This document shows positions 3,753 to 63,000 of a stretch of DNA of 64,000 nucleotides, piece by piece; within the stretch, counting starts at the first letter, position 1, and the number at the start of each line of letters is the position of its first letter. The DNA comes from Octopus sinensis. Its lineage: Eukaryota. Under the pieces are notes generated by a model. That model did no database searches, was not told where the DNA came from, and was given only the letters and a program-made list of their open reading frames with translations. The stretch covers positions 21,390,001 through 21,454,000 of the forward strand of contig NC_043005.1 of the NCBI RefSeq assembly GCF_006345805.1. The letters run 5' to 3'. Made by a program: the position numbers and the translations under genes.

Positions 3753-3923
3753 CCTATGCAAACATTGACTGTGAAACTCCAAAGGAAGTTGTTGGTGCAC
3801 TAAAGTCCTACAAAACTACCATCTATAAATCTGTAGTGACCTATACTTGTCCAAAGGGAGAACAGCTAAAGTCAATATGTGAAATGAACAACAAATGGAC
3901 TCCAGTGGCAAAAACATGTAAAG
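3753..3923 (+). CDS. Exon C1, Sushi/CCP domain
   Basis: tttcag|CC...AAAG|gtaatg; [56 protein letters not shown]; 171 nt, phase 1-1. Confidence 0.9.
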
Positions 3924-6900
3924 GTAATGTAAATAGCTTCTCTTTTGTTGTCTCTGTCTAAGTAATTTTTTAAAATTTTCATGTTGAATGTTTTTGACAG
4001 AAGAAACTCACTGAAAATACAACTTCCACTGTGTTTGTCGGAAGTGTTTAGTCAGTACCATCAACCCTACTATTTGACTGGTACTTTTATGTTAGTCACC
4101 CCTACAAGTATGACATCAGCTTGATTTGAACTTATACCCAAAAGACCCTAATACAGGCTGTAAAGCATTTCTTCCATTTTTTAAATTAGTATATATATCA
4201 TCATCAGCAGCAGCAGCATTGTTTCTGCTGCTGCTGTCAACACCACCATCACCGCTACCATTACCATTTTCATCATCATCATCATCATCGTCTGTTTTCT
4301 ATGTTAGCAGGGCTGGATGGTTTGAGAAGGAGGCTTGAGGATTTCATGACATAGCTGCTTCAGTCATGACTAGCTTGTTAAAATATATAAGTAACAACTC
4401 ATTGTAATCAATTTATATTTATTGTTTAGGCACATAGTTAAGCATTATTAGAGAAAGCAATGAGATTGTGTGATATTCATGCCTTTCTAAAGGTCATTAA
4501 CTATGTAAAGTGAACTGACTCACACCATTCCGTTCATATTTATACTAAAAGAACAATTAAGGAAGAATACTCAATGTCATTTCCTGCAACAAAAACAAAT
4601 GGTAAAGTGTTTACTTATTGAACCAAGATATGATTAGCTAAAATTTTTACCATCAGTGTTTGTGGAAAAATTATCATATTAAAAATTTATTCTGGTCATG
4701 ATATTCAGATGTGACAATCTTGTAAAGATGATCTCTTTTTACTTCATTTCATTCAAAGTATAATTTTGTTGAATTAAAATTTCTTAACTTGCCACATTAA
4801 GGTGTGAGTGTTCATCTTTACTACATATTTTCATTTATTCACTAGATGATGAAAGGGAAATTATTTTTGTATTCCCTGGTAAAACATCGCAAAATAGTAA
4901 AGTGGTGAGTTGTAGTACATGCCATGATTAAGCATATGTAGTTATGTCCTTTTACACATTACATTCAAATCCCAGCATGCTGTACTTCACTGTTCATAAT
5001 TCTGAGGCTGATAAAACAAGCACTGGTCAAGTTCTAGTTCTAAGATTGATTTACTTTCATGAATCCTCACTGCTGAATGCATGGCCTTGTGTTTAAGTTA
5101 GGAAACATTATTATTAATATTGTTATCATCAACAATAATTATAATTATTCTTCTTGTTAAGGGTGACGGATTGACAGGATCATTAAAGCATCAGACAAAA
5201 GGTTTTTGTGGTATTTCTTCAGGCTCTTTAACCACTGAATTCAGATCTTACTAGTGTTAAATTTTCCCTTCCTGAACCAATAAGATAAAATACCATTGAA
5301 GTGTAGAGGCCAATTTACTTGACCAATTCTGATCACAAAGATTTCTTTGTTTGAAATTGTGTTGTTATTTTTCATCGGTCTAAATTTTATTTTAACTCTA
5401 GATTCTGAAATCCATTTTGTAAAAGTAAAAGGTGCAGCTATGGATGTATTTGGGAAAATATTATGGAATAAGAAAAAAGTAACAGTGGAAGCCTGTGCAC
5501 AAAAATGTTTGACTGACAAAAAATGTTTATCATTTGAAATTAATAAAAAAAATCGAAAATGTTACTTCTTAGCGGTAACTGCAGCTACCTCTAAGAAAAT
5601 GAAAAAAGACAACAGCAGAGATTATTACCAACGAGTAGAACGTAATTATTCTTTGTGTTTCACTTTTCCTCCTTTTCTGAAATTTATGATTCCATTTGTA
5701 CTTCATCGTATGTAAACAGCCATTTCTGTAATGACATTGATAGGTATACCTATAAAAGGTATCCCTATGAATTTTTGAAAATATTTAACTCTAATTTCTA
5801 CTGTTATTTTTTCTTGGAGAGAAAATAATTGATACCTCATTTGCAGATACACAGATATACACAAACAAACACACATGCATGTGCATGTATGCACACCATA
5901 CAAATTACATACCTATATATGCATGTATAGGTATAGAAAAATACAGAGATATACAAATTGTTATCAAAAAGTCTATGACATAGACCAGTCCACTTCCAGA
6001 GGAACTTTTATTGAAACACATCTGATAATCAATAATCAGCCCCTTCAAGCTGTAGGAAGATTCACTTTCATTGGGAGTATGCTGTCAAAGAGTGTTCACA
6101 TTGGTGATGTACTGAATACAAAGATAGTAAAAAGCAGCTCTGCCTTTGGACATCTTTGTCTCTAGGTTTACCTAGAAACGTGAAACATGATATATACAAA
6201 ACTGTTGCAGTAATTACATTACATTATGGATATGGAATCTGAACAGTTTACAAAAGACACACTATAGAATCACTTTCACCAATCATGCCTGTGAAAAGTT
6301 CACTGCAGCAAGTGGCAATATAAAATTCCAAATAACTACTGCACTAGTGAGAGCTAGTATGTTGAACTCACAGTTGTCTCTCAGTCTTGTGGTGAACTGA
6401 AGAACAGAAACAAAGACACTCTCAAGACAAATTGTAGCTTAGAGCAGTCTGTTGGGGTAACATCTTGCTCCAGGATGTTCACTGTGCCATAGTTCTGTGT
6501 ACTCTAAAGTGCAGAACTGAGAATCAGAAATGATCAGAAAAACTATTATGTGTTTCCATTCTTATTGTGGATTTTATGCTACTATTGGGCCTACACTCAG
6601 CATTGGAACACACAAAGAGTAAAGCTGTAAATCTGGTTATCTTCAAAGACATTAAGGATGAACATCATTTTAACATATATCCCCAAATCCCAAACTGGTG
6701 AAATATCGATACCAATCATTCCTGAATGGGATTTTGGGTGTGTTGTCTCACTTGTCTATGGCTTTCAAGTATTTTGTCATCCAGCACTTTGAGGGAATCA
6801 GCACCACCATGCTGGATTGCAGCCTAACAGCAAACTAGCAAAACAAATACATAGAGTTTGTATTCAGTAATGTTTACAACACTAACACATCCTCTAATTC

Positions 6901-7281
6901 AAATTTGAATTTAATTTTACATCTGCATTGTTGCAGCATGCCAGCGAATGGATTTTACTCTATGTGTATATAGTTATAGAATGGTGATTCAGTTTGCCTG
7001 AGATTCAATTCAGGGACATATTATTGATAAGCCAAAAAAATGGCGAAATATTGATATCCATTGCTCCTGAATGAGATTTAGGGTGAGTTGTCATACCTGT
7101 CTGTGACTTTCAGGTGCTTTAACACCCAATACCCAACACTTTAAAGGAGTCATCTCCACTGCTTTAAACTGCAACCTATTGGTGAACAAGAACGAGCAAT
7201 GCTCACACACTGAGCATATGTCAAATACACACACGCGCAGACACACACACTCACACACACACACACTCACACACTCACACA

Positions 7282-7321
<40 letters not shown>

Positions 7322-7365
7322 AATCATCTCTACCGCCATGGCTATTCCCTTTGATTTTACTTCTG

Positions 7366-7438
<73 letters not shown>

Positions 7439-10400
7439 TTGCGGCCAAAATGTTCAGAGCGGCATTGTTTTCGTCAGAAAAGTAGGTATAAGTTTTTATC
7501 AAAGTTGTTTTATATTCTATAATTTTCACAGACAATAAATACGATATTATTTGTTATTGTCTGAGATTTTGGTGTAATTTGAGAGGATATACAAAAGTTA
7601 TGGATGATTTAGTGATTTACTGCAAAACCCATGGCGGCCAAAATGATCAGAACGGTTGCTTTTACTTCATGTTTTAGTATATTTAACCAGCGAACTCTAA
7701 TGTTTTGAATTTGTTTACATGACGGTTCATTTACTAAACATGCCGTAAGAATATCTGCAGTGTATTTTGTTAATATAATGCCACTTACTCCGTTACCAAT
7801 TTGTCAGCAGATTATTAAGCTTCGAAAGAAGGATAATTTAAGTATTGGGTCTATTGCAAAGATTGTTAACAAGTCAAAAAGTGTTGTTCATGGTATTCTT
7901 AAGGTCTACGATGATTGTGGTTCGTGTGAAGCAAGAAAGTCTACAGGTAGGCCAAGAAAAACGACCAAGAGAGAAGATCGTGCTATGGTAAGGTTGGTTA
8001 AAAAGGTTAGATTTAAAACTGCTGCTGCTGTTTCTCGGGAAATGAACATTGTACTGAAGAAAACTTTATCTCGAAAAACTGTCTCATCGTTTAGTTGAAC
8101 ATGACCTACAAGCAAGAGCACCTGCAGTGAAGCCACTGATCAGCTCCAAGAATAAAAAGTGTCGTCTTACCTTTGCAACCGAACATGTGTTGTGGTCTCA
8201 AGAAAAATGGCAAACGGTGCATTTCAGTGATGAATGTAAGTCTATGTTATTTGGCTCAGATGGGAAAAAGTACGTTCGTCGAAAAGCAGGTAAAAAAATT
8301 GTCGCCTAAATGCCTTAAGACTAATGTTAAATTCGGTGGAGAAAGTGTCATTGTTTGGGGGATGATATCTGGAGATGGTGTGGGCCCTTTTGTGTGATTA
8401 CATGGAAAGACAAATGCAGGAGTTTATAAACAACTTGTAAAAGATCATGTCTTGCCTGTGCTGAGAAATTCAACTAAGCGACCACCCATATTCATGCAGG
8501 ACAATGCCCCATGTCACAAGGCTAAGGCGGTCATAAACTTCCTCAAAGCTGAAAAGGTTATTATTATGGATTGGCTTGCTCAAAGCCCAGATCTCAATCC
8601 TATTGAAAACATGTGCTGGGGTCGGAAAGACAACATCCAGGTCTCCTGGAGAACGTTCGAAAGCCAGAAATCCTAAAACAACCGAGCAATTATGGAATGC
8701 CCTTCAGGAAGAATGGAATAAGATCACCCAGCAAGAAATTGAAAATTTAATTTCCTCATGCAGTCGAAGATGTCAAAGTTTGATTGAAGCTAAAGGGCTT
8801 CACACTAAATATGAAATAATTCCAGCATTCTCTGTCATTCTTGATTATTTTGTTATTTTTTCAACCGTTCTGACCATTTTGGCCACCATGGGTTTTGCAG
8901 TAAATCACTATATCATCCATAACTTTTGTATTATCCACTCAAATTACATCAAAATCTCAGACAATACCAATTAATATTGTATTTATTGTCTGTGAAAATT
9001 ATAGAATATAGAACAACTTTGATAAAAACTTATATCTACTTTTCTGACGAAAACAATGCCATTCTGAACATTTTGGCCGCAACTGTATATATATATATAT
9101 ATATATATGTACACTTTTTATTAAAGCTGCAAAATAATCACATAACTGTTATCCAGTTTCACATTCCTGTTCATCAGGCAGTTGGGATGAAACTTTTATG
9201 CACTTGGTGTATGTATATGCACAGGGTGTGATGGGTAAATTGTTGCCATTTTATACTTTTAATTTTGCACATGCGCAGTGTTTCTTTTTGATTTCGTTGA
9301 CTACACAGTATAGTAGGGTCAGTTGAGCACCATCTGTGAGAAAAGCACTACCATGACGCAATTCACTCTACCAGAAATTTGTAAATGACATGCTATACTG
9401 CTTGGCATTTGTGCCAGAAGCTCCAATATGAACATTTCAAAGTGTTTGGGCATCATTCTGAGGACAGTGCAGAGGATTTGGACTCCAACTAACATGGTTG
9501 GATCTTAGACACCATAAATTAGTAATGTACATGCAATATTTTGGTTTGTAATCAATATTTGTATGGGCTTCATCTATGCTTTGAAGGAAGACTTTGATAC
9601 TGAAGCTAAAACCAAAATAGTTGAATAGTTGCTCAAGATTTAACAAATTTTAGCATATTTTTCATAATATACATAGTGTGTTCCAAATGGTTTTTATTCC
9701 AACAAATTGCGACCTATGGTATTACGGGAACAGGCTATTATTGCTACTACTTAGACAATGCAGTTTGAAATCTACATCAGTTTGTACATGTAATACAACC
9801 TACTTATATCATTTCAGTGGTTGTTTTTTTTTCCAGTTTAACAGAAGCAATGCATGGACCATGCAGGCAGTTATACATACCCCAGGAAAGGTCTTTTTCT
9901 GACCTCAGGGGCCCCATTACTTATTATGGGAAAACTTTTAGAAGTCTAAAACCATCTCCTAAACATATGTCATGTATGTTCTCAGTATGGAGAAAATCAG
10001 TTGCAAACTTCAGAACTTCTGCAGTTTTACACAAACACACACACATCCTTAGTTTTACATATATAAATTGACCATTTACACAACTTTGTACAATGTGCTT
10101 TGCAATATTTAATATAAGTGTGTGTGTGTGTATGCACATGTGTCTCTGTGTGTATCTCTGTGTGTGTGTGTGTGTGTGTCTGTGTGTGCATGTGGGCAGG
10201 CACGCACACACATATGTATAATGTATTTTTTGTTTTCTATTGTTTTGCAGCTGATGAGAAGCCTATTATATTAAAAAAAGTTAGCATACCGAAGAAGTTT
10301 ATTTTAGAAAAGCTTAAGCATAAGACCTTACAGCAGTGTAATGAAACTTGCTATCAACATCCAGTATGTAGTTCTTATGAGTACAATAAGAAAGCTAAAT

Positions 10401-13400
10401 TGTGTGCTCTGAGCAAAGTGGCTCAGTTGTCTGGTAAACTTAAACCTAACTATGGAAGCTGGGATGTATTCATGATTCACCAAGGTCAGTAGAATGTTTC
10501 CATTTAATTTATTGTCTGCATGATTGTGTATATTTACATATACATATGTGATTGTACTAATGTGTGTGTACATTAATATATACTGCTCTACATCTTGGAG
10601 TGCACTTCTCTGGGTTTATGTTTTCCATAAACAATATGTGTGTGTGTGTGTAATAGGTTAAGAGGATACACAGTCATGACACAAAATACAACACTAATTT
10701 TTATGAGAGAGTATATAAACTTCCATATATGATTATTATGAAAGATTTTTTTTCAATTTTATTCCAGTATGAAGTTATTTCAGATGACTGAAACCAATGC
10801 ATATTTTCTTTGTTTTCCATGATAAAGTCTCCCAAACATTTTCATCTTTTACATATTTTTTCAACACACACATGTGCATGCGTGCACATGCACACACACA
10901 GAAGTGGAAAGACAGGTAGACACAGATTGGCTTATTGTGTATAATTACATGGAAATACAAAATACAGAGTATGGAATAAAGAATACAGAATAAATGAAAA
11001 GTTATGTCTTGTCTTGACGGCTGATTCAAATAAATGACAGCTTACACCATTACCACATTCATATATTATAGAATCTCATGATGTTATTAGTGTACAGAAT
11101 AATATGACATCCTATGTATCTGTTAAGTGAAGCCACATCATTCTTCTGATGAAGATGAACTGGCTTCACTTAATGTATCCATTGGAACTTATGTATTCAA
11201 TACATCATTATTATGTATGAACATGTTTATGACTTAAACTATGGTTTGCTCAAAACAACTGTCATGGTAAGACTATTACATAGATCATTTTGTTTATTTT
11301 TTTATTCTTTATTTTGTATTCCATGAAAATACAACCATGCTAGCATGGAAAGCAGACGCTAAATGATGATAAACCTTTCTGAGTTTATCTGCCTTTCTAC
11401 TTCCATACCAGCTCAATGAGGATCATTCTTATTGGTGACATTCTACACTTGAGGCACATGCCCTTGATTAAGGAGTTGGATTTTAAGTTCTCATTTATAC
11501 AAGTACTACTCCATGGATATCTATACCATGCCTCCTTTGCATTCTCCAGCACTTCACAATATGTACACACACACACACATATCATAATTGTCATCATCAT
11601 CATCATCAACTTTTAATGTCCATTTTCCATCCTGGTATGGGTTAGATGGTTTGGCCAAAGCTGGCAAATCAGAGAGCTGCACCAGGTTCCTGTTTGATTT
11701 GGCTTGGTTTCTATGGCTAGATGCTCTTCTTAATGCCAACCACTCTAGAGTGTGTACTGGGTGCTTTTAACATGGCACTGGCATGGGCACTTTTGCATGG
11801 TGCCAGCATGTACTTTTTATGTGGCATGAGAACTGACACAATGTTCTTGTAGGTCAATCTTCTTCATCAGGGGATTAGCCTTAACACTTCTGCTGTGGAG
11901 GACAGGTCTTCTTGTGTACAGCAAGGTGCCACGTATCTCAGTCCAAAAGTTCAGTTCTTCATCCTATGTCTTCCTAGGTCTACCCCTTCCATGAGTTCTA
12001 TCCACTTTGAGTGATCAGCACTTTTTTTGTGAAGCTGTTGACATCCATCCACATCACATGGTCAAACCAGTGCAGTCTTCTCTGTTGCACACTGCATCTA
12101 ATTCCTGCTATGCCAAGCTTTTCTCTCAATACACTTGCAATTTCTCACATATGTACTCTTACATAACACATCCTGTGGAGCATACTAGCCTTATTCCTCT
12201 CTAGCCTTCACATGTCCTCTACATTTGGGGCCCATGTCTCACTACCATATAGAATTGTTGTTTGTATAGATGCATCATATGCCATTACTTTCACTTGGAA
12301 AGAGAGTTATAGCCCAAGTAGGCTTTACTCCAAGGAAGAAGCACTATTGATGGTATTTTCATAGTCAGGAAACTACAAGAGAAGTACTTAGTTAAGAATA
12401 AACCATTATACTTGTCATTTGCTGATCTAGAAAAAGCCTTTGATAGAGTACCCCACTGTGAGACACACTGGGTTCTGAGAAAGCTAGAAGTAGAAGAGTG
12501 GCTTCTGAAAGCTGTACATGCCATGTACAGGGATGCTGTCAGTAAGGTGAGAGTTAACAAAGAATTTGATGTATAGATAGGTATTCATCCTTGAGGAGTT
12601 GTTTGCAAGTGTTCACATTGAGCCTGGTCATTGGTCAGTTTATGAGGAGCTTTTTGACAGTGTCTGTTCACAAGGCTAAGCTTATGGATGTGTTTACTGA
12701 TGGGGCTTTGTGAAACCATCAGTGTATGAATACTTGTGCTTGGTTGTTGTTCAGCTACTTCAAGTAAGGCCTCATTTTCCATTACAAGCTCTCCTGGACC
12801 TTGGTGTCACCTTCCTTGAAACATTTGAACCAGTTTTGTACCACATATTTGGTGACAGTTCCTGAATCTTCCATATCATTAATTTCTTTTGCTGCTTCAT
12901 TTTCACTCAGTCCTTTTTTCCACAAGTAGTGAAAATGGCTCTAATTGCAATTATCTCACCATTCATTTTCAATGCTGTAAAATAAAGAGTAAACAATTAA
13001 TGCATATATGTTATATAGTGAAATAAAGGATAAAGAATCAGCAATGATAAGACAAGAAGTTGTTTCAAATTATTGATACAACATGGAGATACAAGTTGCC
13101 AAAAATCATTAGTGAAAATTTGAAAAAACTTTTGATTCTCATAATTTTTAAATATCTGTATGTATATAAGGCAAGATGTGTGTGTGTGTGTGTACGTGAT
13201 TGTAGTTTATGCACATCCACAAATTAGCACGCATGTTGCTCAAATTTTAGGAGGACGTTCGTCAACATCCTATCTGGGTTTTGTCAATTTATTTTTTTCC
13301 CGAGGCACCCGTGGATAGCGGTAAAAATTTATTTTCAGCCATAGCTTTTAGTGGTAAAAATCTATTTTCAGCCATAGCTTTTTGATGGCGTCTAACAAAA

Positions 13401-24222: not shown

Positions 24223-24257
<35 letters not shown>

Positions 24258-25515: not shown

Positions 25516-25553
<38 letters not shown>

Positions 25554-35388: not shown

Positions 35389-35419
<31 letters not shown>

Positions 35420-38045: not shown

Positions 38046-38122
<77 letters not shown>

Positions 38123-40997: not shown

Positions 40998-41058
<61 letters not shown>

Positions 41059-41689: not shown

Positions 41690-41750
<61 letters not shown>

Positions 41751-47700: not shown

Positions 47701-49490
47701 ATGTAAAAGGGATACAAAATGGACATCGGTACCACCTTGTGAAGGTAATGTAAATAGCTTTTCTTCTCTTGTCTCTAACAAGATACTTTTGTTTTATTTT
47801 TGCTAGATTGAATGGGATATTTATTTTGGTGTGTTTAAGATGGCTTGAACTGAAAAGTAGATACTGTTTTGAATCTGTTGGTTTGTAGTAGATGTCAGTT
47901 GCAATTTGGTTGTTGGATATTTTTATAATCAAAATGTCCAGAAATGGGAGCTGTTCCTTGCTATATTCCATTGTAAATTGAATGTTGGAGTTTGTCATTG
48001 AATCCCTGAAGTTCATCCTACAAAACAATTACTTCCTATTCGATGCAACATACTAATGCAGTATTGCAATGGGAACAAAAGCAGTGCCTGTCCTTTTAAT
48101 AATGGGTTTCTTTAAATCTACCCTATATGAACTTTTGCTCTAAAAATTTGGACCCCGCATTTTATAATAAATACTATTTACTCATACTTTTCTTTCTATT
48201 CATTTGATTTTATGTAATCCATTCATTGGATTTTATTATCCCTTAATGAGGTATTTATCCTTTAACTGAAGTTATTTATATATGTATGTATATCATCATC
48301 ATCGTTTAACATCTGCTTTCCATGCTAGCATGGGTTGGACGGTTTGTCTGTGGGATGGCGAACCAGATGGCTGCACCAGATTCCAGTCTTGATCTGGCAG
48401 TGTTTCTACTGCTGGATGCCCTTCCTAACACCAACCACTCCAAGAGTGTAGTGGGTGCTTTTACATGCCCTCAGCACGGGGGCCAGTCAGGCGGTACTGG
48501 CAATGACCTCACTTGTATTTTTTTTTAACACATGCCAACAGCACAGGTGCCAGTAAGGCAATGCTGGTAACAATCCCGCTCAAATGGTGCCTCCTACATG
48601 CCACCAGCATGGAAGCCAGTTAGCCGCTCTGACAACGATCATGCTCAGATGGTGCTCTTAGCACCCTACTAGCACGGGGTACAAGTGCCAGTAAGGCGAC
48701 GCTGGTAACAATCTCACTCAAATGGTGCCTTTTATGTGCCACTGGCATGGAACCTGTTAGCCGCTCTGTCAACGATCACATTCGTATGGTGCTCGTGCCC
48801 GTCATCAAATTTCACTTTGATTTTGATTTCAATTTCACTTGCCTCAACAGGTCTTTGCAAGCAGAGTTTAATGTCCAAAGAAGGAAAAGGTTCACATAAG
48901 TGGGCTGGTTACGTCCCTGGCGCAGGCCACTGGTTATGGTCTCATTTGGCTTGCCGGATCTTCTCAAGCACAGCATATTTCCAAAGGTCTCGGTCACTAG
49001 TCATTTCCTTGGTGAGGCCTAAAGTTCGAAGGTCGTGCTTCACCACTTCATCCGAGGTCTTCCTGGGTCTACCTCTTCCACAGGTTCCCTCAACCTCTAG
49101 CACATGGCACTTTCTCACACAGCTATCCTCATCCATTCTCACTACATGCCCATATCAGCGCAGTTGTCTCTCTTGCACACCACATCTGATGCTTCTTAGG
49201 TCCAACTTTTCTCCCAAGGTACTTACACTCTGTTGAATATGCACACTCACATTACACATCCATCGGATCATACTGGCTTCATTCCTTGTGAGCTTACACA
49301 TGTCCTCAGCAGTCACAGCCCATGTTTCACTGCCATGCAGCATGGCTGTTCGTACACATGCATCATACAGTCAACCTTTTACTCTGAGCAAGAGGCCATT
49401 TGTCACCAGCAAGGGTAAGAGCTCTCTGAACTTTGCCCAAGCTATTCTTATTCTTAATGTATGTATGTATGTATGTAGGTATATATATAT

Positions 49491-49578
<88 letters not shown>

Positions 49579-50282
49579 TATACATACACATACATTTACA
49601 TAAAAGTAAACAACAGGTTGTATAGTGTGATGTATAGATAAATCAAGGCTAGGACAGAAAGAACAGAAGCGGAAATCCAACAAAAAGCAACATATTTTGT
49701 TTTTTGTTGGATTTCTACTTATGTTCTTTCTATCCTACTCTTGATTTTTATATATATTTATATATGTGTGTGTGTGTTTGTGTGCCAATTTAGATCGTAG
49801 TTGTGGCCAATGCCAGTGTTGTATATCTGGCACATAAAAAACACTCTTTAAACATTGGGTGATATGTTGTGCTTGAGAAGACCTGTCAAGGCATGTGAAA
49901 TTGTAGTCATGGCCAATGTTAGTGCCATCTGGTTGGGGTTTGTGTCAGTGGCACATAAAAAGCAGCGTTCAAGTGTTGGGCCTAATGAAGGCAGTAACAG
50001 ATGATCAAAGCCTTTGGCAATATACTGTGCTTGTGTAAACCTGTGAAGCCAAGTGAGGTCATAGTCATGGCTGATGCCAGTGTCACGTCAATGGCACCCA
50101 TGCTGGTGGCACATAAAAAGCACCCACTATACTCTTGGAGTGGTTGGTGTTTTAGGAAGGGCATCCAGCTATAGAAACCTTGCCAAATCAGAATGGAACC
50201 TGGTGCAGCTCCCTGGCTTACCAGTTTTCAGTCAAACCATCCAACTCATGCTAGCATGGAAAGCAGACGTTAAACGATGATG

Positions 50283-50330
<48 letters not shown>

Positions 50331-53300
50331 TCCATCATTATCATTCAGAAATCTATGTTCCATGGGTTGCACTTCTTAACAGGATCCAATGAGCCCAAGG
50401 AGTCATCATGTTCCAATGTCTGCTTCAGCATGGTGTCTATGGCTGGATGCCCTTCCTAATGCCAACCACTTTACAGTGCCTGCTGGGAGAGTTTTCATGT
50501 CACCAATACTACTATTATCACCATATGAATCTCAAGAGAACAAATTCCAAGAGAGAAGTGGGTTAGCTTTATGCTGGGGAATGAGGGGTTAACATGTGAG
50601 AGAAGAGGATGTTGGTGCAAAGCAGATTCTTGGGGAAAAGTTGCATGTTTGCTAATATTTAGTAGGTAGGAGGGAATGGTCAGAAGGAGCTGCAGTTAGA
50701 TAGATAGTAGAGATGAAGTGTCCAGGAGACCCTTAAAAGTGAGTAGAAAAGGGTGGTGGGTTTGCAAGACTGTACAGGGTGGAGAAGGTGTGGGGATGGG
50801 GAGGCAGCCTGCAATGGTAAAATGTTAGGTAGTGTTGAAGAGCAATAACTGATCAGTCATGAGTTGGGGAAGAGAAATGGATGCAGAAGAGTGTAGGTGG
50901 TGTTGAGAGCCACAGGACAGTAATGATATAGTTGTCAAGAAACAGATAGATGACAATGTGGAGTAAGTGAATTAGAGAAGGTGAATCAGTGTAATGTGTG
51001 GGTGGAGAGCAGAGTATACAAAGTGCTTCCAGAACTCTGTCTCACTGACACGGACAGGTTGTCTCAAGAACCTCATATACTCAGTCATTCTGGTCCTTTA
51101 TTTCCTCTGTAAGGCTCATCATCTTGAGATCACCCCTCACCACTTCATCCTATGTTTTCTGAGTTTCTGTGTTCCACAAGTTCCATCCGCTTTAAGTGAT
51201 TGGCTCTTTTTTTATACAGCTATCCAATCCATATACTTCTGATGACCAAACCATCTCTTGCACACTGCATTATTCCTCTTATGTCCAATTCATCTCTCAA
51301 CACATTTGTACTTTCTATATATTCTCTCTGATGTTGCACATTTTTTGAAGCACATTAGCTTCATTCCTCGTTAGTCTTTGCATATCCTCATCATTCCCAA
51401 TCCACATCTTACTGCTAGGTGGTATACTTGTTCATATACAAGCAGCATACAATCTGCCTTTCACTCATTGAGAGATCTTTCTTTACCAACTGAGGTAATG
51501 ACTCATTGAACTTTCTTCATCTTAATCTAGCAACAATACATTCAGAACATCCTCTTCCGACGCTAATTAGGTCACATATGTAAAAGAAACTATCTACAAC
51601 CTCTAGGATGTTTCATGGGAATTTGAGAAAATCCAATTCTCATGTGTCTCTAGTGTATATTGTTCCTGCACATCTACCACATACAAAGACTACTTTCACT
51701 GTTAACCTTCCTGTGATTTTACTGTACCACTTATATGTCCATAGTTTGCACTGGGTACACTATATGGAATCCCTGCCAAAATTTTTTCCATATATCATAC
51801 AGGACACACATATAATATACGTTCACCATTAGTATCATCTGTTTTCAATTTCAGCCTATGCAGACATTGACTGTGGAAATCCAAAAGATATTGTTGGTGC
51901 ATTAAAGTCCTACACAGACACCACCTATAAATCTGAAGTGACCTATACTTGCCCAGAGGGAGATCAATTAAAGTCAACATGTGAAATAAACAACAAATGG
52001 ACCCTAGTGGCAGAGTCCTGTAAAGGTAATGTTAATAACTTCTCTTTTGTCTCTGTTTGGTAATTTTGTCTTGTGTGTTGAATGTATTTGTCATAGGAAG
52101 ACTGACTGAAGACGCAAGTTCTGCAGTGTTTGTGGCTGTTGGTGGAGGAGAACTAGTTATCCTCAGACCAAAGATCTCACAAATGCTTGCATCAGAGTGA
52201 ACATCATTAGTTCTAACAAAGGACCAGGTTGTGGTTTTTAATTGCATGATGGATTAAATCCACTAACCAAGAGCTGGTAGTGTAGAAACCTGTTCCTCTC
52301 CTGCACACTCCCACATAACTTGTATCCACTACATTTCATTCAAAAGGCTTAGTTACAAAGTGAATTTTTAACCATGCAGACAAAATTCCACCTACTTCAA
52401 TATTGTTGTAAACTTATTACTTCCAAAGCTAAAACACCACAACTCAACTTGATAGATAGTCTCTTTATTTCTAACTTGACTTTTCTCACCTGCACTTTGT
52501 GGCATCCTTTAAAACTCTATATGATATAATGCCTGAGCTTTTCCGTACCAAAACTTAGCAATCCTCTGAAACAGTCTTCTGACGCTCATGTTATCTTCCA
52601 CTCCACCATCCATAATTATAATACTTCTTCAAATAATGATAATGATTTCTGATTTAACCACAAAGCCACTCTAGCCATTTTTGCCATACTGTCATTGCTT
52701 TCAATAATTTCCCTTGGAGACAGTATCTTACTCTCTATCCTCACCATCTTAACAAGTGAAATTTACAATGCAGATGAGAGATTGACTGTTGTCTGACCTT
52801 TCAGCCTCATCCACCACACAATTGCATTTGCTATAGCTACCAAACAGAGAAAAACTGTCTTTCCTACCTGGCTAAAGGAGAGTGTAGGGCAATAACATTA
52901 CACACAACAGCGGCTGTTTGACATAACTTAAGAACTCAGCAATACTTGGATGTTGAATGAGCGCTTGCAAAATGACTTCATTTTACTGCATACATCTCAA
53001 AGGCCTGTCTTAGCACTTTCATAACTGTAGACTTTATCTTGGACCAGGAGAGCCCTTTGGTTACACTGCCAGGCCAAGGACTTCAGAAAGTTGTCCAAAA
53101 CACCAAGTCCTCCAAAAAAGAAGGAAAAACTTATCAGTTCATTTTTATGGATGACCAGAGCAACTTTGGAATAAGTGCTCTATCCCTCTACGAATCTTCA
53201 ATAGATTGTTAGATTGAAATACCACCAATCCCATTGCCTCATTCATATTTGATCCTGCATATAATATTTTCTAAAATCCTTTGGATTATATTAAATAACT

Positions 53301-56300
53301 TGAAATACCATTTTTTATGATGGTTTGTGTGGGATTGAAGGAGATTTTGTTAATATTTCTAACATACTGGGCATTCACATAGAGGATTCCACAGTAAATA
53401 TTGAACTTAGTATTACAAGCTAACAGATCTAACCCAGCTTATCTTCTGATATAATCTTTTGTGTGTAATCAGCTAATATTTATTGTTTAGGCACATGACT
53501 AAATCTTATTAGAGAAGGTAACGAGATTGTGCGATATTCATGTCTTTCTCAAGGGCATTAACTATCTGAAAATCAAATCTAGTCATTGACTCACACCACT
53601 CATTCCATATTTATACTAAACAACTAGATATAAATACTCAGGCTCACTTCCAGCATAGGAAGCAAATACTAAATAAAAAAATATTAAAGTGGCTTCTTAT
53701 GATTAACTAAAATTTTTACCATTAGTGTAAAAAAATAATGTTAATGACTTATTCTGGTCATGATATTCAGAACTGTCAACCTTATAAAGATAATCAGTTT
53801 TTTTCTTCATCTCATTAAAAGTAATAATTTTAATGAAATAAAATTTGTTACTATATATTAATATTTGTTCATGAGATGATAATGAAAGGGAAATTATTTT
53901 TATATTACCTGGTAAAGCATTGCAAAACAGTAAAGTGATGAGTTATAGTCTGATCCTTGATTAATCATATTTAGTTACATCCTTTTACTCTCAGGCTTCA
54001 AATCCCGCCATGATGTACTTCACCTTTCATACTACTGAGGTTGAAAAACAAGCTCTATTCAAGTACTGAGGTTGATTTATTTTATGTATCCTAACTGCAG
54101 AATATGTGGCCTTATGTTTAAGGTAGAAATAATTATTATTACTATTGGTAACATCGATAATAATTATAGTTATTCTTGTTGCTAAGAGTGATGGATTATC
54201 CAGATCATTAGAGCATTGGACAAAATGTGTTGTGGTACTTGTTCTGTTTCCTTATCTTCTGAATTCAAATCCTGCTTATGTTAATTTTACCTTCCAGGGC
54301 CAAGAAAATGAAATACCAATGAAGTGCAGAGGCCATTTTACTTGACCCATTCTGGCTCCAAAGATATGGCCTAATTTTTATTGTAGAAACTTTTGTGTTA
54401 TTGTTATTTTTCATTGGTCTGAATTTTACTTTAACTATAGATCCTCAGATTCATTTTGCGAAAGTAAAAGGTGCAGCTCTGGATGTATCTGGGAAAAGAT
54501 TATGGAATAAGAAAAAAGTAACAGCAGCAGACTGTGCAGAAAAATGTGTGTCTGACAAAAATTGTTTATCATTTGAAATAAATAAAAAAGGTGGAAAATG
54601 TTATTTATCAAGGGAAAGTGCAACTCTCACTAAGAAAATTTACCTAGACAATAGCAGAGATTACTATCAAAAAGTAAAACGTAATTATTCTTTGTATTTT
54701 ATTATTGGAATTCTGTTTGCCTCTTTTTCTGAAATTTGTGATTTTATTTGTACTTCATAGTATATATACAACCATTTCAGTGAAGACATCGACAGGTTTA
54801 CCTGTAAGGACAGGCATGGACACATTCTTGACATAAGCAATATTAGGAACTGTAAATATGTTAGAGTATTCTCATGCAACTTTTATCCACCTTGAACAAT
54901 TTTATGCATGCTTTCAGTCATATTTCTGTGTAAGAAAAGAAACTTATGTTGTTCTTCTTAAACCGGAGCAGGATTAGTGGTTGTGGTGGTGGTAGGAGTT
55001 GGAATATGAGTAATAGCAGCAGTAGTAGTAGCAGCAGCAACAGCAGCTTTTTATCCATTTCTATATGTTGGCATGGCTTAGAGAGTGATGTTACAGTTCA
55101 ATGTTACACCAAACTTAACAATTAATACCAATGTATCTGCTTTCAACAAAGTAGACATTACTCTAGAATTGAAGTCTGCAATCCTTACTCAATATCATGA
55201 TCAACATGCTTGGCTATTCTACAAACAGTTGAAAGAGCCTCTATTTGTCTACATTCTCTATCTAAATTAAATGTTTTTTTGAGTGATGTCAAATATCAGG
55301 TCATCCCATAAGATCTGTCCGAATTTTGAATAAAGAAAACAAGTGATCAAATGTTATATTTAATTGAAATTTAATCATCAATGTACTTTCCCTGATTATC
55401 TATGACTTCCTTCCATCTATTTACAAGCTTTTTAATCCCATCAATGTAAAACTCTTTTGGTTTCAAAGCAAAGAACTCTGAAATGTCAGTTTCAACCTCC
55501 TCCTGGCTTGCAAAAGTTATGTCCCCCAAATGATTCTGTAAACTACAAAACAAATGGTAGTCTGAAGGAGCAAGGTCGGGAGAATAAGGTGGATGAGGAA
55601 TTTTTCCCCAACCAAGCTCTTCGATCTTCTGTGATGTGATCTTTGCAGTGTGGGGTCATGCATTGTCCTGATGAAACATCACTCCTTTTCAATTCACTAA
55701 AGTGGGTCTAAATGCTATCTCTACAACTATCACCAACATTCTCATATTAACCAATATGCTACTCTTTATAAGAGTTTGGCTAGTCCATTCTTCCAATCCC
55801 TTAGGTGTGTCAGTGACTCTTGCCACAACATCTCCCCCTTTGAGATTTAATTCCATTTGAAGTTAATAATTTTTATTTATTTTTCTTTCATCATATCTCC
55901 CTTTTTGAGATTTTCTTCCTAGGGAAGTTTAATGTTTCTTCTGTTTAGGCATTACTTCCAACCATTCTGTTTGTTTCCTCTTTCTTGTGCTGCTACAACT
56001 AGTTTCGATTTCTTGTGGCATTGGAACATCAAAGGGGTCATAGAACACTTCAATGGGTATCTTTTCTTTTACCCATATATCTGTTTTTTAGCTGGTTTAA
56101 ATGCTTTTTGTGTTCCCATTTTTCGCCTCTTATCATATATGTCATTTTTGCCTATTCTTTTTATTACTACTCCATCTTCCCAACTTTGTTTTCCATTTTT
56201 ATATATTTTGAAAAACACCTTGTCACCAATATTCCAATATTAAAAAAACTTTGTTGTATTTTTAGTGTTTTCCCTATTTGTTTTTCTTACTGGTAGCAGC

Positions 56301-58318
56301 TTGTCAAATTTTGACTTCATTTTTCAAGCCAACTGTAGTTCTGCAGACAACTTCCCTGAAAAAGCATTTAAGTTTGGTATTAACCTATAAACCCTCAAGA
56401 ATCGTGTCAATCATCGACTAGCTCATTTCTTGATTTCTTTAATGCTCTTTTAAATGTATCCATGAACCTTTCTGCTTGCCCGTTAAATCTTGGGTGATAT
56501 GGAGGAGTAGTAATATGTTCAATTAAGAACATCTTTTAAAATTTCTTAAATACATTCGCCATGAATTGTGTACCATTATAACATCTCTTATTTTTCAAGC
56601 ACCATCTGGAGTATCCGAGTGGTTCCAAGGAGTGCTGTTTTCTACAAGTACTCTACTCTTATTGCTTGCAGCCCTTATTTGTTCCATGTACTTCTCAAGA
56701 TTTTTACTCACTGTTCCCAGGGTTCTGACAATTATTGGTACTACCACCACCTTTATCAGCAACTGAAACTGCTTAACCGCCCAAGTTAACCTGTCATATC
56801 TATTGACTTTTCTTTCTTCTTTGTCACATACCTTGTTGACAGCTGGGCATGCTATATCTATGATCTAGCATCGTTTGCTTTCTTTCTCAATTAACACTGT
56901 GTCTGGTTTCCTATCCTCTATCTCATGGTTGCCTTGAATCATAAAATCCTATACGATCTTTGCATAATCATTTTTGATGATGCCTTTATGTTTGTACCAC
57001 TTTTTTGCTCTGTCAAGTTCAAATTTGTTGCAAAGTATTCAATGGACAATCCTTGCTATATTGACATGACATCTCTTATATTCTTTCAGCACTAGTAGTG
57101 TACATTCACTGGTTATATGCCATATGGTTTCACCATTTTGTCCACAAATTCTGCACTTATCACCTTTTGATGTGCTGTCTATTCTGTATTTGATGTAATT
57201 GGTTCTTAATGCTTGCTCTTGAGCAGCACAGATTAGAGCCTCCATTTCCGGTTTTAAATCCTTTTTGGTCATCCATAGCCATCTTCTTTCCCTGTCTGTC
57301 TTATTTTCAACAATCCTATGAAATTGTCCATGCATTCCTTTCTTTATCCACCTATTTTCAGTTTCATTCATTCTCAAGTGTTTGTACAGTGCTTATCTTT
57401 GCAATCTTCCATCATGCACAAGCCAAAGAAGGTCATTATTATTATTGTTGTTGTTGCTTTTACTACTACTGCTAATACTACTACAACTACTACTACTGCT
57501 GCTGCTGCTGCTTTAGAGCTGTTTTTAAAACTAGATAATTATGCAGAAGTACCAGTAATTGAAATTGTGAATAGAATATTAGAAAAACAACCAGTGAGGT
57601 ATTTCCTAAATGAACAGTATATTACAAAAACACCATCCATCAGCAAAATTATTTTTCAGAATAAGTCATGCTTCTCAGAGATATTGTGAACTCTAATAAA
57701 TCATGAGACTTATATGGAACCTCACTTCAGTGTTTAGGTTGTACATCCTTCTGATGATGTGCATTTGTTTAAGACAGAATAATACAACAATATTTGACAC
57801 ATATGCTGACTACCTGTTTCAAGGAATACTGATGTTACAAAATCAAACCATTACAGAAGAGATGTACAACTGTATTATCTGCCACCTAAATAAGGAGACA
57901 AGGATCCAATAAGTCTGAATGTGTTTTACAACTCGTATGAATTCTGGTTAGTGTGTCCTTTCATGGATCAAATATATGTTTATAATAAATTGACCATTTA
58001 CAAAATTATGCACAACTTGCGTTACAGTATTTAATATAAATGCATGTGTATAAAATGTATTTCTTGCATTCTATTGTTTTCCAGGAAATATGGAGCAAAT
58101 TATGTTTAAAAATGTCAGCATACCAGAGAAGACTACAATAGGACAGTTTGAGGATATGACCTTAAAGGAGTGTAATGAAACTTGTTATAGTATTGAAGAA
58201 TGTAATACTTTTCTGTACAATGAACAAGCTATGTTATGTGATCTGAGCAATGGGACTCTGTTGACTCATAAACTTAAACCCAACAAAGACGGTTGGGATA
58301 TTTACATAGTTAACCCAG
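3753..58318 (+). CDS. Internal portion of a large modular extracellular-type protein gene with (Sushi-PAN-PAN)n architecture; 16 exons in window
   Basis: 16 AG/GT-bounded exons, all phase 1-1, lengths 168/171/234/240 nt, no stops when joined in order (3390 nt, 1130 codons). Cys spacing matches CCP and PAN/Apple domains. Start exon not found. Confidence 0.85.
5402..5641 (+). CDS. Exon A1, PAN/Apple domain type A
   Basis: ctctag|AT...GAAC|gtaatt; [79 protein letters not shown]; CxxxC..C..C pattern plus DYY; 240 nt. Confidence 0.9.
5985..6365 (+). mobile_element. RTE/BovB-like LINE fragment
   Basis: [43 protein letters not shown], typical post-RT RTE segment. Confidence 0.65.
7225..7435. repeat. 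Compound microsatellite (CA)n-(CTAT)n-(TA)n
   Basis: Directly visible; the TA run is the insertion site of the Tc1 element. Confidence 0.95.
7436..9085 (+). mobile_element. Tc1-family (DD34E) transposon, full length 1650 bp, IR/DR-type ends, transposase pseudogene
   Basis: TA|CAGTTGCGGCC...GGCCGCAACTG|TA; about 223-bp TIRs (7436-7658 and 8862-9085, about 94% identical); transposase from ATG 7778 to about 8813 with [24 protein letters not shown] (34 aa between D and E), broken by frameshifts and a stop. Confidence 0.95.
9221..9650 (+). mobile_element. Fragment of a Tc1/mariner-type DNA transposon
   Basis: Starts CAGGGTGTGATGGGTAAATTG after TA-rich flank, followed by degenerate HTH-like coding; recognition from memory only. 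Confidence 0.45.
10251..10484 (+). CDS. Exon B1, PAN/Apple domain type B
   Basis: ttgcag|CT...CAAG|gtcagt; [13 protein letters not shown]...[26 protein letters not shown]...WDVFMIHQ; 234 nt. Confidence 0.9.
11585..12292 (-). mobile_element. RTE LINE 3' end with (GAT)n tail
   Basis: Minus strand LYGSETW...LREKLGI...RRLHWF...GRGRPRKT, then 3' UTR and tail. Confidence 0.8.
12295..12590 (+). mobile_element. RTE LINE RT fragment in opposite orientation to the adjacent 3' end
   Basis: [39 protein letters not shown]...[11 protein letters not shown] on + strand. Confidence 0.8.
12590..12975 (-). mobile_element. mariner transposase N-terminal (HTH) fragment
   Basis: Minus strand [14 protein letters not shown]...[11 protein letters not shown]...[15 protein letters not shown]. 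Confidence 0.7.
13155..14308 (+). mobile_element. Non-autonomous Helitron-like element
   Basis: A|TC 5' end, CTAG|T 3' end, subterminal hairpin CCTGG-gcaagg-CCGGG (14281-14296), no TSD. Confidence 0.75.
14570..14700 (+). mobile_element. RTE LINE ORF2 C-terminal fragment
   Basis: [35 protein letters not shown]. Confidence 0.7.
15119..15289 (+). CDS. Exon C2, Sushi/CCP domain
   Basis: ttccag|CT...AAAG|gtaatg; [56 protein letters not shown]; 171 nt. Confidence 0.9.
16340..16790 (-). mobile_element. Old Tx1/L1-like LINE 3' fragment shared among units (homologues about 27700-28150 and 52740-53160)
   Basis: Reverse complement aligns with 18440-18850 (YGSAI...CPRCAQS...H.L.QC knuckle). Confidence 0.65.
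16800..18860 (+). mobile_element. Degenerate Tx1/L1-clade LINE (RT plus CCHC knuckle)
   Basis: [44 protein letters not shown]; many stops and frameshifts. Confidence 0.85.
19211..19450 (+). CDS. Exon A2, PAN/Apple domain type A
   Basis: ttccag|TT...AGAT|gtaatt; [14 protein letters not shown]...[26 protein letters not shown]...RDYYQRLR; 240 nt. Confidence 0.9.
20345..23250 (-). mobile_element. Near full-length degenerate RTE/BovB-like LINE
   Basis: APE endonuclease motifs (GVGFAI, ILSMYA, ILGDFN, HLIDYI, DHRLI) and RT motifs (YRGISLL, LFADD). Confidence 0.85.
23923..24156 (+). CDS. Exon B2, PAN/Apple domain type B
   Basis: tttccag|CT...CCAG|gtcagt; [77 protein letters not shown]; 234 nt; not in the ORF track. 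Confidence 0.9.
24297..24404 (-). ncRNA. Type I hammerhead ribozyme motif (left arm, identical copy)
   Basis: Exact reverse complement of 25212-25319; predicted cut after nt 24316 on the minus strand. Confidence 0.75.
25212..25319 (+). ncRNA. Type I hammerhead ribozyme motif (right arm)
   Basis: CTGAAGA 25227-25233; 12-position stem II with one mismatch (25234-45 with 25277-88); GAAA 25289-92; minimal helix III AC-ATGT-GT; GUA site at 25298-25300; stem I ttc/gaa plus aattcct/aggaatt. Confidence 0.75.
25640..26345 (-). mobile_element. RTE LINE RT and Cys-rich fragment upstream of C3
   Basis: [26 protein letters not shown]...VLNPLLFI; DMEKAF; Cys-rich segment. Confidence 0.8.
26540..26710 (+). 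CDS. Exon C3, Sushi/CCP domain
   Basis: tttcag|CT...AATG|gtaatg; [56 protein letters not shown]; 171 nt. Confidence 0.9.
29163..29326 (+). mobile_element. tRNA-derived SINE
   Basis: A-box-like GTGGCTGTATGGT, B-box-like GGTTCAGTCC, microsatellite tail; second copy at 35219-35385. Confidence 0.8.
29640..30855 (-). mobile_element. Probable non-autonomous Helitron-like element
   Basis: Minus strand starts A|TCTCTATATATAAAAG; internal repeated block (29728 and 30671); 3' end not firmly located. Confidence 0.4.
31129..31368 (+). CDS. Exon A3, PAN/Apple domain type A
   Basis: ctctag|AT...AAAT|gtaatt; [14 protein letters not shown]...[26 protein letters not shown]...RDYYQRVK; 240 nt. Confidence 0.9.
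32191..33490 (-). mobile_element. RTE LINE 3' portion with (GAT)n tail
   Basis: [55 protein letters not shown], then 3' UTR. Confidence 0.9.
33540..34670. repeat. Cryptic AC-rich low-complexity tract
   Basis: About 1.1 kb of degenerate CA/ACAC/AAAC units with almost no G on the + strand. Confidence 0.9.
35219..35830 (+). mobile_element. SINE cluster: tRNA-SINE, RTE-type tail fragment and a second SINE 3' part, separated by microsatellites
   Basis: Copy of the 29163 SINE; ggaagggcatccagc...gatgatgat tail; ataagtactaggcttacaaag...gaaacaagtaaaagag. Confidence 0.7.
36013..36246 (+). CDS. Exon B3, PAN/Apple domain type B
   Basis: tttccag|TC...CCAG|gttagt; [15 protein letters not shown]...[26 protein letters not shown]...WDIYVINP; 234 nt. 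Confidence 0.9.
36315..36870 (+). mobile_element. Penelope-like element GIY-YIG endonuclease fragment
   Basis: [18 protein letters not shown]...[36 protein letters not shown] once the nested MITE is removed. Confidence 0.8.
36432..36650. mobile_element. piggyBac-like MITE, 219 bp
   Basis: TTAA|CCCTTTCGTTAC...GTAATGAAAGGG|TTAA; 12-bp TIR with 1 mismatch; TTAA duplication. Confidence 0.85.
36870..37850. repeat. Degenerate AT/GT-rich simple repeat tract
   Basis: Mosaic of TA, ATGT, GTAT units. Confidence 0.85.
37958..38032 (+). ncRNA. Type I hammerhead ribozyme motif
   Basis: Stem I ttgtcttaataa/ttattatgacaa (11 of 12 bp); CTGATGA 37970-37976; stem II GGACATC/GGTATCT extended by GAAGCT/AGCCTC; GAAA 38008-11; GUA 38018-20. 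Confidence 0.75.
38224..38391 (+). CDS. Exon C4, Sushi/CCP domain (weak AAG acceptor)
   Basis: caattaaag|TT...AAAA|gtaatg; [55 protein letters not shown]; 168 nt. Confidence 0.8.
39763..40002 (+). CDS. Exon A4, PAN/Apple domain type A
   Basis: atccag|TT...AAAC|gtaatt; [15 protein letters not shown]...[26 protein letters not shown]...RNYYQRIK; 240 nt. Confidence 0.9.
40180..40380 (+). mobile_element. SINE of a second family (other copies about 44470-44680 and 44720-44945; decayed copies just upstream of every PAN-A exon)
   Basis: gctggcagaaatgttagc...ctttgcctttcat...aagtaccagtt...ggccttctgcc; multiple copies in window. Confidence 0.7.
41895..42220 (+). mobile_element. Dong/R4-like non-LTR RT fragment
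   Basis: [14 protein letters not shown]...YKYL..DEN. Confidence 0.6.
42221..44461 (-). mobile_element. Truncated Ty3/Gypsy LTR retrotransposon (gag-PR-RT) with PBS and probable 5' LTR
   Basis: Gag knuckle [13 protein letters not shown]; [35 protein letters not shown]; [13 protein letters not shown]; minus-strand LTR end ..TAACA followed by PBS TGGCAACAAGGAT (about 44128-44140); LTR about 44143-44461 (outer end uncertain). Confidence 0.85.
45519..45752 (+). CDS. Exon B4, PAN/Apple domain type B
   Basis: ttctag|CT...CCAG|gtcagt; [15 protein letters not shown]...[26 protein letters not shown]...WDIHIINP; 234 nt. Confidence 0.9.
46005..46790 (-). mobile_element. Dong/R4-like RLE-type LINE 3' part next to a (TAA)n run, plus adjacent repeat 46005-46195
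   Basis: [45 protein letters not shown]; (TTA)n at 46196-46222. Confidence 0.8.
46900..47250 (+). mobile_element. RLE-type non-LTR element C-terminal fragment
   Basis: [30 protein letters not shown]...[13 protein letters not shown]. Confidence 0.6.
47577..47744 (+). CDS. Exon C5, Sushi/CCP domain (extra copy not followed by PAN exons)
   Basis: ttccag|TT...GAAG|gtaatg; [55 protein letters not shown]; 168 nt. Confidence 0.85.
47790..48140. mobile_element. Penelope-like RT fragments in two opposite orientations
   Basis: Minus: [32 protein letters not shown]; plus: [17 protein letters not shown]. Confidence 0.7.
48293..49455 (-). mobile_element. RTE LINE 3' portion with (GAT)n tail
   Basis: [41 protein letters not shown]. 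Confidence 0.9.
49458..49600. repeat. (ATGT)n-(TA)n microsatellite
   Basis: Directly visible. Confidence 0.95.
49790..50285 (+). mobile_element. RTE LINE 3' UTR fragment
   Basis: gtggcacataaaa repeat units and ..agcagacgttaaacgatgatgat tail. Confidence 0.7.
51855..52025 (+). CDS. Exon C6, Sushi/CCP domain
   Basis: tttcag|CC...AAAG|gtaatg; [56 protein letters not shown]; 171 nt. Confidence 0.9.
54441..54680 (+). CDS. Exon A5, PAN/Apple domain type A
   Basis: ctatag|AT...AAAC|gtaatt; [14 protein letters not shown]...[26 protein letters not shown]...RDYYQKVK; 240 nt. Confidence 0.9.
55298..55700 (-). mobile_element. mariner transposase C-terminal fragment
   Basis: [55 protein letters not shown]. 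Confidence 0.8.
56330..56560 (-). mobile_element. Gypsy integrase fragment
   Basis: [26 protein letters not shown]. Confidence 0.75.
56560..57430 (-). mobile_element. Dong/R4-like LINE, CCHC plus RLE fragment
   Basis: [39 protein letters not shown]. Confidence 0.8.
58085..58318 (+). CDS. Exon B5, PAN/Apple domain type B
   Basis: ttccag|GA...CCAG|gtcagt; [15 protein letters not shown]...[26 protein letters not shown]...WDIYIVNP; 234 nt. Confidence 0.9.
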
Positions 58319-62810: not shown

Positions 62811-63000
62811 ACTATATATATATATCAGTTGAATAAAGTTAAAACATGATCTGTTTTAACTTTATTCAACTGATATATACATTCACATGAATTCAAAACT
62901 ATATGTATATATATTTTACTGGTGAAGGCTGGTTTATGGGGTTACCTTGGGTTTCCTGTGCAGAAAGGGTTTCCCATATATATATATATACATATATATA

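Follow-up and report, generated by a model that had tools for sequence, protein, structure and literature searches.

The locus described here raises the question of what protein is encoded by a long chain of small, widely spaced exons, and whether that chain represents a complete gene or a section of a larger one. The window, i.e. the entire stretch of 64,000 nucleotides of Octopus sinensis DNA that was analysed, has the composition of AT-rich eukaryotic DNA, with a G+C content of 36.5%. Tblastn searches seeded by three open stretches revealed six Sushi-type, five PAN-A-type and five PAN-B-type segments (denoted S, A and B), all on the + strand. They correspond to 16 exons at positions 3753-58318, with boundaries read from the sequence and an AG directly preceding each exon. 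The exons occupy 6.2% of the 54.6-kb span and are separated by introns of 1.4-5.5 kb.

The order of the encoded domains in the window is four S-A-B modules, followed by a single S and a further S-A-B module. The chain opens with the Sushi (CCP) exon S1 (3753-3923, 171 nt, phase 1-1, donor gtaatg), which is succeeded by A1 (5402-5641, 240 nt, donor gtaatt), a member of the basic PAN class A, and by B1 (10251-10484, 234 nt, donor gtcagt) of PAN class B, the latter two being matched by the Pfam PAN_1 profile. The second module comprises S2 (15119-15289), A2 (19211-19450) and B2 (23923-24156), and the third S3 (26540-26710), A3 (31129-31368) and B3 (36013-36246, donor gttagt). In the fourth module, S4 (38224-38391) has a length of 168 nt and a weak acceptor, ttaaag, and is followed by A4 (39763-40002) and B4 (45519-45752). 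The single Sushi exon S5 (47577-47744, 168 nt) precedes the last module, formed by S6 (51855-52025), A5 (54441-54680) and B5 (58085-58318). Exons S2, B2, S3, A3, B4, A5 and B5 were assigned from their boundaries and cysteine pattern.

Within each class the exons are highly uniform. Sushi exons measure 171 or 168 nt, PAN-A exons 240 nt and PAN-B exons 234 nt, all multiples of three; every intron of the chain lies in phase 1, and all exons are phase 1-1. The donor gtaatg is present in all six Sushi exons and gtaatt in all five PAN-A exons, while the PAN-B exons use gtcagt (four exons) or gttagt (one exon). Spliced together, the 16 exons yield 3,390 nt free of stop codons, consisting of 1,129 complete codons and one split codon, which accounts for a count of 1,130 residues. 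Each of the 16 domains contains four cysteines, and none of the 64 has been lost; the Sushi tryptophan is retained as well. In the Sushi modules, which are 56-57 residues long, C7, C33, C43, W49 and C56 are invariant. An initial annotation of this DNA had proposed 16 phase 1-1 exons with class-specific lengths and donors, one domain per exon and an open 1,130-residue peptide with its structural cysteines kept; all of this was reproduced at the same coordinates, and the one-to-one relation of domains and exons is supported. Searches with nhmmer exon profiles, and with tblastn using nine homologues, gave no seventeenth or decayed exon in the window, including the gap between S5 and S6 and the flanks, and scans of the window for tRNAs and Rfam families gave no matches.

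The profile search that had been suggested for the spliced peptide, run with Pfam, identified PAN_1 in ten stretches (E-value 3e-76, 251.7 bits) and Sushi in five (3e-16, 60 bits; cut-off 20.7). Single PAN exons are recognized as well, with PAN_1 scores of 42.5 bits for A1 (5.8e-11) and 38.0 bits for B1 (1.5e-9) at a cut-off of 21.4. Exon S1 alone scores 15.8 bits against Sushi PF00084, which is under the cut-off, compared with the 60 bits of the whole chain. An AlphaFold2 model of one triplet (pLDDT 82, pTM 0.66) displays an all-beta first module (residues 1-57) followed by two helix-on-sheet modules. The best matches in a Foldseek search of the PDB are apple domains 1-2 of TgMIC4, the lectin SML-2, the apple domains of factor XI and prekallikrein and the N domains of HGF and plasminogen, with sequence identities to characterised PAN domains of 14-24%. 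A profile search of PDB sequences additionally retrieved the CCPs of DAF (6e-8), CR2 and CR1, and again MIC4. The modules are thus predicted to fold as CCP and PAN domains. Among 212 domains of the family, 211 contain four cysteines (119 of 120 in the PAN subset), and the mean net charge is +6.2 for class A, +2.4 for class S and +0.3 for class B. PAN-B domains carry on average 1.5 N-X-S/T sequons.

The chain is an internal part of an annotated gene, LOC118764742, the product of which, XP_036361601.1 (UniProt A0A7E6F191), is named "uncharacterized protein". The gene spans 152.7 kb on the 109.7-Mb chromosome CM016867.1 and the model comprises 2,643 residues, of which 461-1665 correspond to the exons in the window. 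Consequently, the exon chain of the proposed 1,130-residue protein holds, but it is only an internal slice of a product of at least 2,643 residues. The predicted product appears to be a mosaic extracellular repeat protein of unusual architecture. The RefSeq model and the 16-exon chain agree in 15 of 16 exon peptides and in 12 of 15 junctions, so that the splice chain as first drawn is largely shared, except for three introns which RefSeq splices differently and which are all A-to-B introns. In the first of these, RefSeq ends A2 at an internal donor, AAA/gtgagt (19356; window positions 19354-19362), whereby the fourth cysteine is lost, and inserts a 64-nt exon between A2 and B2 (21376-21439, + strand), located among retroelement-like ORFs without Pfam confirmation; this internal GTGAGT donor is unique to the A2 repeat. 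In the second, the model passes the A4 donor, continues to 40076 and then uses a small exon at approximately 43499-43564, the start of which was read from the sequence. In the third, a 114-nt phase 1-1 exon encoding a hydrophobic stretch is placed between A5 and B5 (56265-56378, + strand). Nothing corresponding to these three small exons is present in any other repeat or at the loci of O. vulgaris and O. bimaculoides.

It is conceivable that the actual mRNA follows the RefSeq isoform instead of the clean 16-exon chain, in which case three of the five A-to-B links carry inserts that do not belong to any domain. XP_036361601.1, the sole public model, has exactly these structures, the internal donor of A2 is closer to the consensus than gtaatt, and all three variants maintain the reading frame. 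The canonical donors, however, are intact and of a type shared by 29 of the 32 PAN-A exons in the loci compared, and the automated models of the Octopus S-A-B family are visibly fragmentary. We therefore regard this possibility as unlikely. On sequence grounds, the 16-exon chain is favoured over the RefSeq splicing at the three A-to-B links, because the additional exons recur nowhere else and the A2 variant lacks a cysteine that is present in all but one of the 212 domains.

The exons differ from their class consensus at 8-24% of sites, giving 530 differences in total. When these 530 differences were re-placed on random sites of the same base in 5,000 trials, on average 27.9 stop codons and 22.0 lost cysteines were obtained and none of the trials was clean, whereas the observed exons contain neither. 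Indels in exons are limited to a single codon (in S4 and S5), in contrast to the intron flanks, which are rich in gaps. Since the exon lengths are exact, the flanks are gapped and no random trial was clean, the reading frame, exon length and disulfide scaffold are under purifying selection, and chance and pseudogene decay are excluded. The remaining residues diverge fast. Nei-Gojobori dN/dS ratios between repeats are approximately 0.3-0.9 for S, 0.8-1.3 for A and 0.5-1.4 for B, and in PAN-A the synonymous divergence pS is about 0.21, close to the divergence of the flanks. Between O. vulgaris and O. sinensis, nine exons differ by six nonsynonymous and three synonymous changes, but at an intron divergence of 0.6% the two species are too close for an orthologue dN/dS. 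The values near 1 in PAN-A correspond to weak constraint on most residues, and single repeats may matter little. Surfaces that vary on a constant scaffold are in line with a role in binding varied ligands, but would also be expected from weakly constrained redundant repeats.

These ratios near 1 in PAN-A, together with the heavy transposon load of the introns and the fragmentary annotation, might be taken to mean that the array is a relic, no longer expressed or needed, which is drifting towards pseudogenes. This is barely credible in view of the 3,390 nt without stop or frameshift and the complete set of 64 cysteines, compared with the losses expected at random, and of exact exon lengths amid many flank indels, a situation that is the same in three species.

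The introns contain abundant foreign material, as had been proposed from the first reading of the sequence. Transposon remains are located at 7709-8971, 12322-12573 and 16946-18109 on the + strand and at 42642-43208 and 62355-62855 on the - strand, and comprise a Tc1/mariner-type transposase (HTH and DDE_3 domains), RVT_1 fragments and a PHD-finger ORF beside retroelement-like ORFs. The introns further contain at least six copies of an interspersed repeat of 170-280 nt, which occur in either orientation and are 75-91% identical (11599-11769, 32184-32458, 35456-35626, 48277-48486, 50092-50290 and 63401-63900). The copy near 63.5 kb has an internal tandem structure, and relatives of the repeat in O. 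vulgaris and O. sinensis loci reach up to 95% identity. Microsatellite and low-complexity tracts, rich in CA/TG and TA, occur at 7186-7482, 33570-34726, 35359-35460, 37120-37800 and 49366-49640, and translate to HTHT, CVCV and YIYI runs in several frames. At 32-36 kb, such tracts are accompanied by a strongly negative GC skew.

The introns flanking the PAN-A exons are themselves similar between repeats. Over approximately 250 nt upstream and 100 nt downstream the flanks are 68-82% similar, for instance at 5150-5401 and 5642-5740 (A1) and at 54190-54440 and 54681-54780 (A5), compared with 71-87% for the PAN-A exons; around the Sushi and PAN-B exons, the similarity of the flanks falls off more quickly. 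With blastn, blocks of 500-1,400 bp around the exons align to O. bimaculoides loci at 66-78% identity. The similarity of the PAN-A flanks could be due to near-neutral shared ancestry or to conserved splicing signals. In vertebrates, conservation of intron flanks between orthologues is typical of alternative exons. As all 16 exons in the window are symmetric, they could in principle be skipped in frame as regulated cassettes, generating many isoforms of a recognition protein for immune or self/non-self discrimination. The individual divergence of the repeats, with high dN/dS on a fixed scaffold, and the conservation of PAN-A flanks to the same degree as the exons are in line with this idea. Symmetric phase-1 exons, however, are normal for mobile extracellular modules and require no role in splicing, and conservation of flanks between paralogues may reflect near-neutral shared ancestry, as the pS of PAN-A indicates. 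We consider such a splicing-based repertoire quite improbable.

Although S-A-B modules are present as first described, the triplet is not the actual repeating unit. The complete product XP_036361601.1 has the domain order AB SAB S / SAB SAB SAB SAB S / SAB SAB SAB SAB S / SAB S, from which a higher-order unit of 13 domains emerges: S-S-A-B, S-A-B, S-A-B, S-A-B. The S5-S6 doublet is a regular element of this unit. S-S doublets recur every 13 domains in XP_036361601.1 and in the O. bimaculoides models P0001 and P0003, and with a period of seven in other models. Moreover, for nine of the 14 Sushi domains of XP_036361601.1, the most similar Sushi in the gene is located at a distance of exactly 13 domains (binomial P of approximately 5e-5). 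PAN-A and PAN-B show no 13-step similarity. In the window, the closest pair of Sushi domains is formed by S1 and S6, which are 13 domains apart and are both second members of a doublet. The first member of the doublet of S1 lies upstream of the window and is the Sushi directly before S1 in XP_036361601.1, while S5 opens the next unit as the first member of its doublet. The window thus contains one 13-domain unit, less its first Sushi (upstream of base 1), and the start of the next. The tandem amplification that had been proposed is supported. The option that the lone S5 is a triplet stripped of its PAN domains was dropped, since there are no decayed exons between S5 and S6 and doublets are periodic elsewhere.

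The same rules hold well beyond the window: of the 110 exons counted in the window and in five further loci from three Octopus species, 106 conform to the phase 1-1, class length and donor rules. In O. vulgaris, four adjoining models on the same strand encode 4,470, 861, 857 and 3,597 residues (approximately 9,800 in total), with gaps no longer than ordinary introns. The edges of these models fall within repeats or between the two Sushi domains of a doublet, and differ from the edges in O. sinensis despite the 0.6% intron divergence. The O. bimaculoides models that were fetched span 88.25-88.83 Mb of CM046610.1, and repeat exons continue upstream of the first model in the 10 kb examined there. 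A GON domain (1.2e-34) closes the last O. bimaculoides model, which is followed by a CACHD1-like gene; no GON domain is present in the window. A GON end is observed only in O. bimaculoides and in the cuttlefish. No signal peptide, transmembrane segment or true first exon was found in any of the Octopus array models, which all begin inside a repeat. XP_036361601.1 itself opens with transposon-like residues and has no signal peptide.

These observations suggest one giant gene as the simplest reading, based on the abutting models, and LOC118764742 itself probably represents part of a single giant tandem array. Alternatively, the array could consist of separate mid-sized genes as annotated, for example of 667 and 2,643 residues in O. 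sinensis, each driven by a promoter of its own. All three annotation pipelines split the array, and a PAN-A exon at the boundary of the O. bimaculoides genes LOC106869390 and LOC106869402 (L001, positions 9983-10228) could mark a real break. This exon is without a clean phase 1-1 reading, an anomaly that could stem from a genuine lesion or a misassembly, or could explain the split between the models. Separate genes are nevertheless difficult to reconcile with model edges that lie inside repeats or S-S doublets and are placed differently on the orthologous DNA of O. vulgaris and O. sinensis, with the fact that no model starts with a signal peptide and only the last, GON-bearing one has a terminal domain, and with inter-model gaps no longer than usual introns. 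We regard the division into separate genes as possible but doubtful.

The relatives of the array are confined to a narrow group. The nine relatives retrieved by a word-indexed protein search are all uncharacterised Octopus proteins with 47-57% identity. In a HMMER scan of 1.84 billion representative proteins, using a profile of the window triplet S6-A5-B5 and 23 homologous triplets, full S-A-B triplets were detected only in O. sinensis, O. vulgaris and O. bimaculoides. The gene itself is already annotated, though uncharacterised, and its relatives are named "uncharacterized" or carry an automatic "SVEP1-like" label; no paper on LOC118764742 or related Octopus Sushi-PAN genes was found in the literature, in keeping with the initial annotation, which had recognized no named family. 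Reports of octopus SVEP1, in a skin-mucus proteome and a visual-system atlas, concern the true SVEP1 orthologue, which is another gene, and the accessions of the Octopus Sushi-PAN array are not listed in the available text of the skin-mucus proteome from O. vulgaris. Logan contigs with short single-exon ORFs and intron read-through reveal many further diverged copies in public reads. One-to-one orthology between the window and O. bimaculoides repeats was rejected, as the best matches are non-collinear and no closer than within-gene paralogues.

The A-B pair alone has a wider distribution. It is present in smaller cephalopod proteins, namely hypothetical and "zonadhesin-like" proteins of Argonauta hians and a WSC-domain protein of O. 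bimaculoides, and also in PAN arrays of an annelid. The small A-B cephalopod proteins (P0027, P0102 and P0105) have, as judged by eye, hydrophobic, signal-peptide-like N-termini. In the cuttlefish Acanthosepion (Sepia) pharaonis, CAE1175485.1 consists of PAN-B, CCP, CCP and GON, with a PAN-A-like exon just upstream at the locus and no more repeats within approximately 7 kb upstream. At this locus (L006, 17739-18074) both CCPs share one exon, whereas in Octopus each CCP has its own. The CAE1175485.1 locus appears to represent the gene in its unamplified form. Because cuttlefish carries a single A-B-S-S-GON unit, the gene is older than Octopus and only its amplification lineage-specific; the proposed lineage specificity therefore stands for the amplified triplets, which are restricted to Octopus, and not for the gene as such, which has a single-unit homologue in cuttlefish.

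Domains of the PAN, CCP and GON types are extracellular; heparin is held by the HGF PAN domain, and galactose by tandem-PAN lectins of Apicomplexa. The window is rather probably an internal piece of a giant array, composed of S, A and B domains in 13-domain units, that encodes a secreted multivalent binding protein. The presence of these domain types and of sequons suggests that the product is extracellular, and it would then be a secreted, disulfide-rich and glycosylated protein with a beads-on-a-string build. By analogy with HGF and heparin and with the apicomplexan lectins and galactose, its many basic PAN-A domains may hold polyanionic glycans or proteins in a multivalent fashion, while the diverged PAN-B domains may contribute specificity and the CCP modules may serve as spacers between the PAN pairs. 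In effect, the protein could cross-link or coat a foreign surface, mucus or the extracellular matrix. The argument for such ligand binding is one of predicted fold and charge. A more far-reaching idea combines the putative single transcription unit (approximately 9,800 residues in the O. vulgaris models, hundreds of kb and more than 130 skippable exons) with an octopus-specific repertoire of surface or secreted recognition proteins that would have grown from a PAN-PAN-CCP-CCP-GON gene; we regard this as a decidedly long shot.

If the array is indeed one gene, it would be very large among animal coding genes, and would represent a clean case of 13-exon higher-order tandem amplification within a gene of which the unamplified state is kept in cuttlefish. 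It would also offer a dated and testable example of giant extracellular proteins arising through exon shuffling and unequal crossing-over. Extracellular proteins restricted to octopuses might contribute to octopus-specific biology such as mucus, egg coats, sucker or skin chemistry and innate immunity, and a disulfide scaffold that stays fixed while the surfaces change fast suggests that this one binds varied ligands. The RefSeq and ENA models of the locus are fragmentary and mutually inconsistent, and the rules on class length, phase and donor would permit a correct re-annotation.

The cuttlefish protein CAE1175485.1 resembles the Octopus models in its exon ends, YFQRIR/RN and IFNP/G, and in one GON exon that is 66% identical over 65 residues, but it contains a single unit compared with dozens in Octopus. 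The closest structural and sequence match to the A-B pair is provided by Toxoplasma MIC4 and Sarcocystis SML-2 (Foldseek E-values of 6e-5 to 4e-4; hmmsearch E-value of 7e-6). These proteins also contain tandem PAN domains and bind ligands multivalently, and the likeness of the Octopus modules is at the level of the fold. Their identity is only 15-18%, CCP and GON domains are absent from them, and they belong to an unrelated taxon with an unrelated biology. The N domains of HGF and plasminogen and the apple domains of factor XI and prekallikrein superimpose as single domains with deviations of 1.8-2.9 Å over 76-83 residues, at 21-24% identity, and the HGF N domain is, like octopus PAN-A, strongly basic. 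The octopus chain carries neither a kringle nor a protease. True apple domains, moreover, contain six cysteines, the third disulfide joining the N- and C-termini, compared with four in the octopus domains, which are therefore PAN and not apple domains in the strict sense.

The octopus Sushi modules resemble the CCPs of DAF, CR1 and CR2, and a beads-on-a-string build is common to CCP arrays, including SVEP1. In DAF, CR1, CR2 and SVEP1, however, the CCPs form runs, whereas in the octopus array they alternate with PAN pairs. SVEP1 further contains VWA, EGF-like, HYR and pentraxin domains, which are absent from the octopus chain and its relatives, in which Pfam identifies PAN, Sushi and one GON. 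In ADAMTS-9, ADAMTS-20 and GON-1 the GON domain follows a reprolysin protease and TSP1 domains, while the relatives of the octopus array have neither protease nor TSP1 according to Pfam. The closest systems are the other Octopus models, i.e. LOC118764741 of O. sinensis, CAI9728790.1 (4,470 residues) and its neighbours in O. vulgaris, and LOC128248837-40, LOC106869390 and LOC106869402 of O. bimaculoides, the last of which bears the C-terminal GON domain. They have the same three module classes, phase 1-1 exons, class lengths and donors, and S-S doublets with a period of 13 or seven. They differ in that any two repeats, within or between species, are 45-77% identical, and in that the introns of O. 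bimaculoides are much shorter than those in the window. With its one-exon modules of approximately 171, 240 and 234 nt, phase 1-1 exons, class-specific donors and S-S doublets, the window has all the features of the Octopus S-A-B array family.
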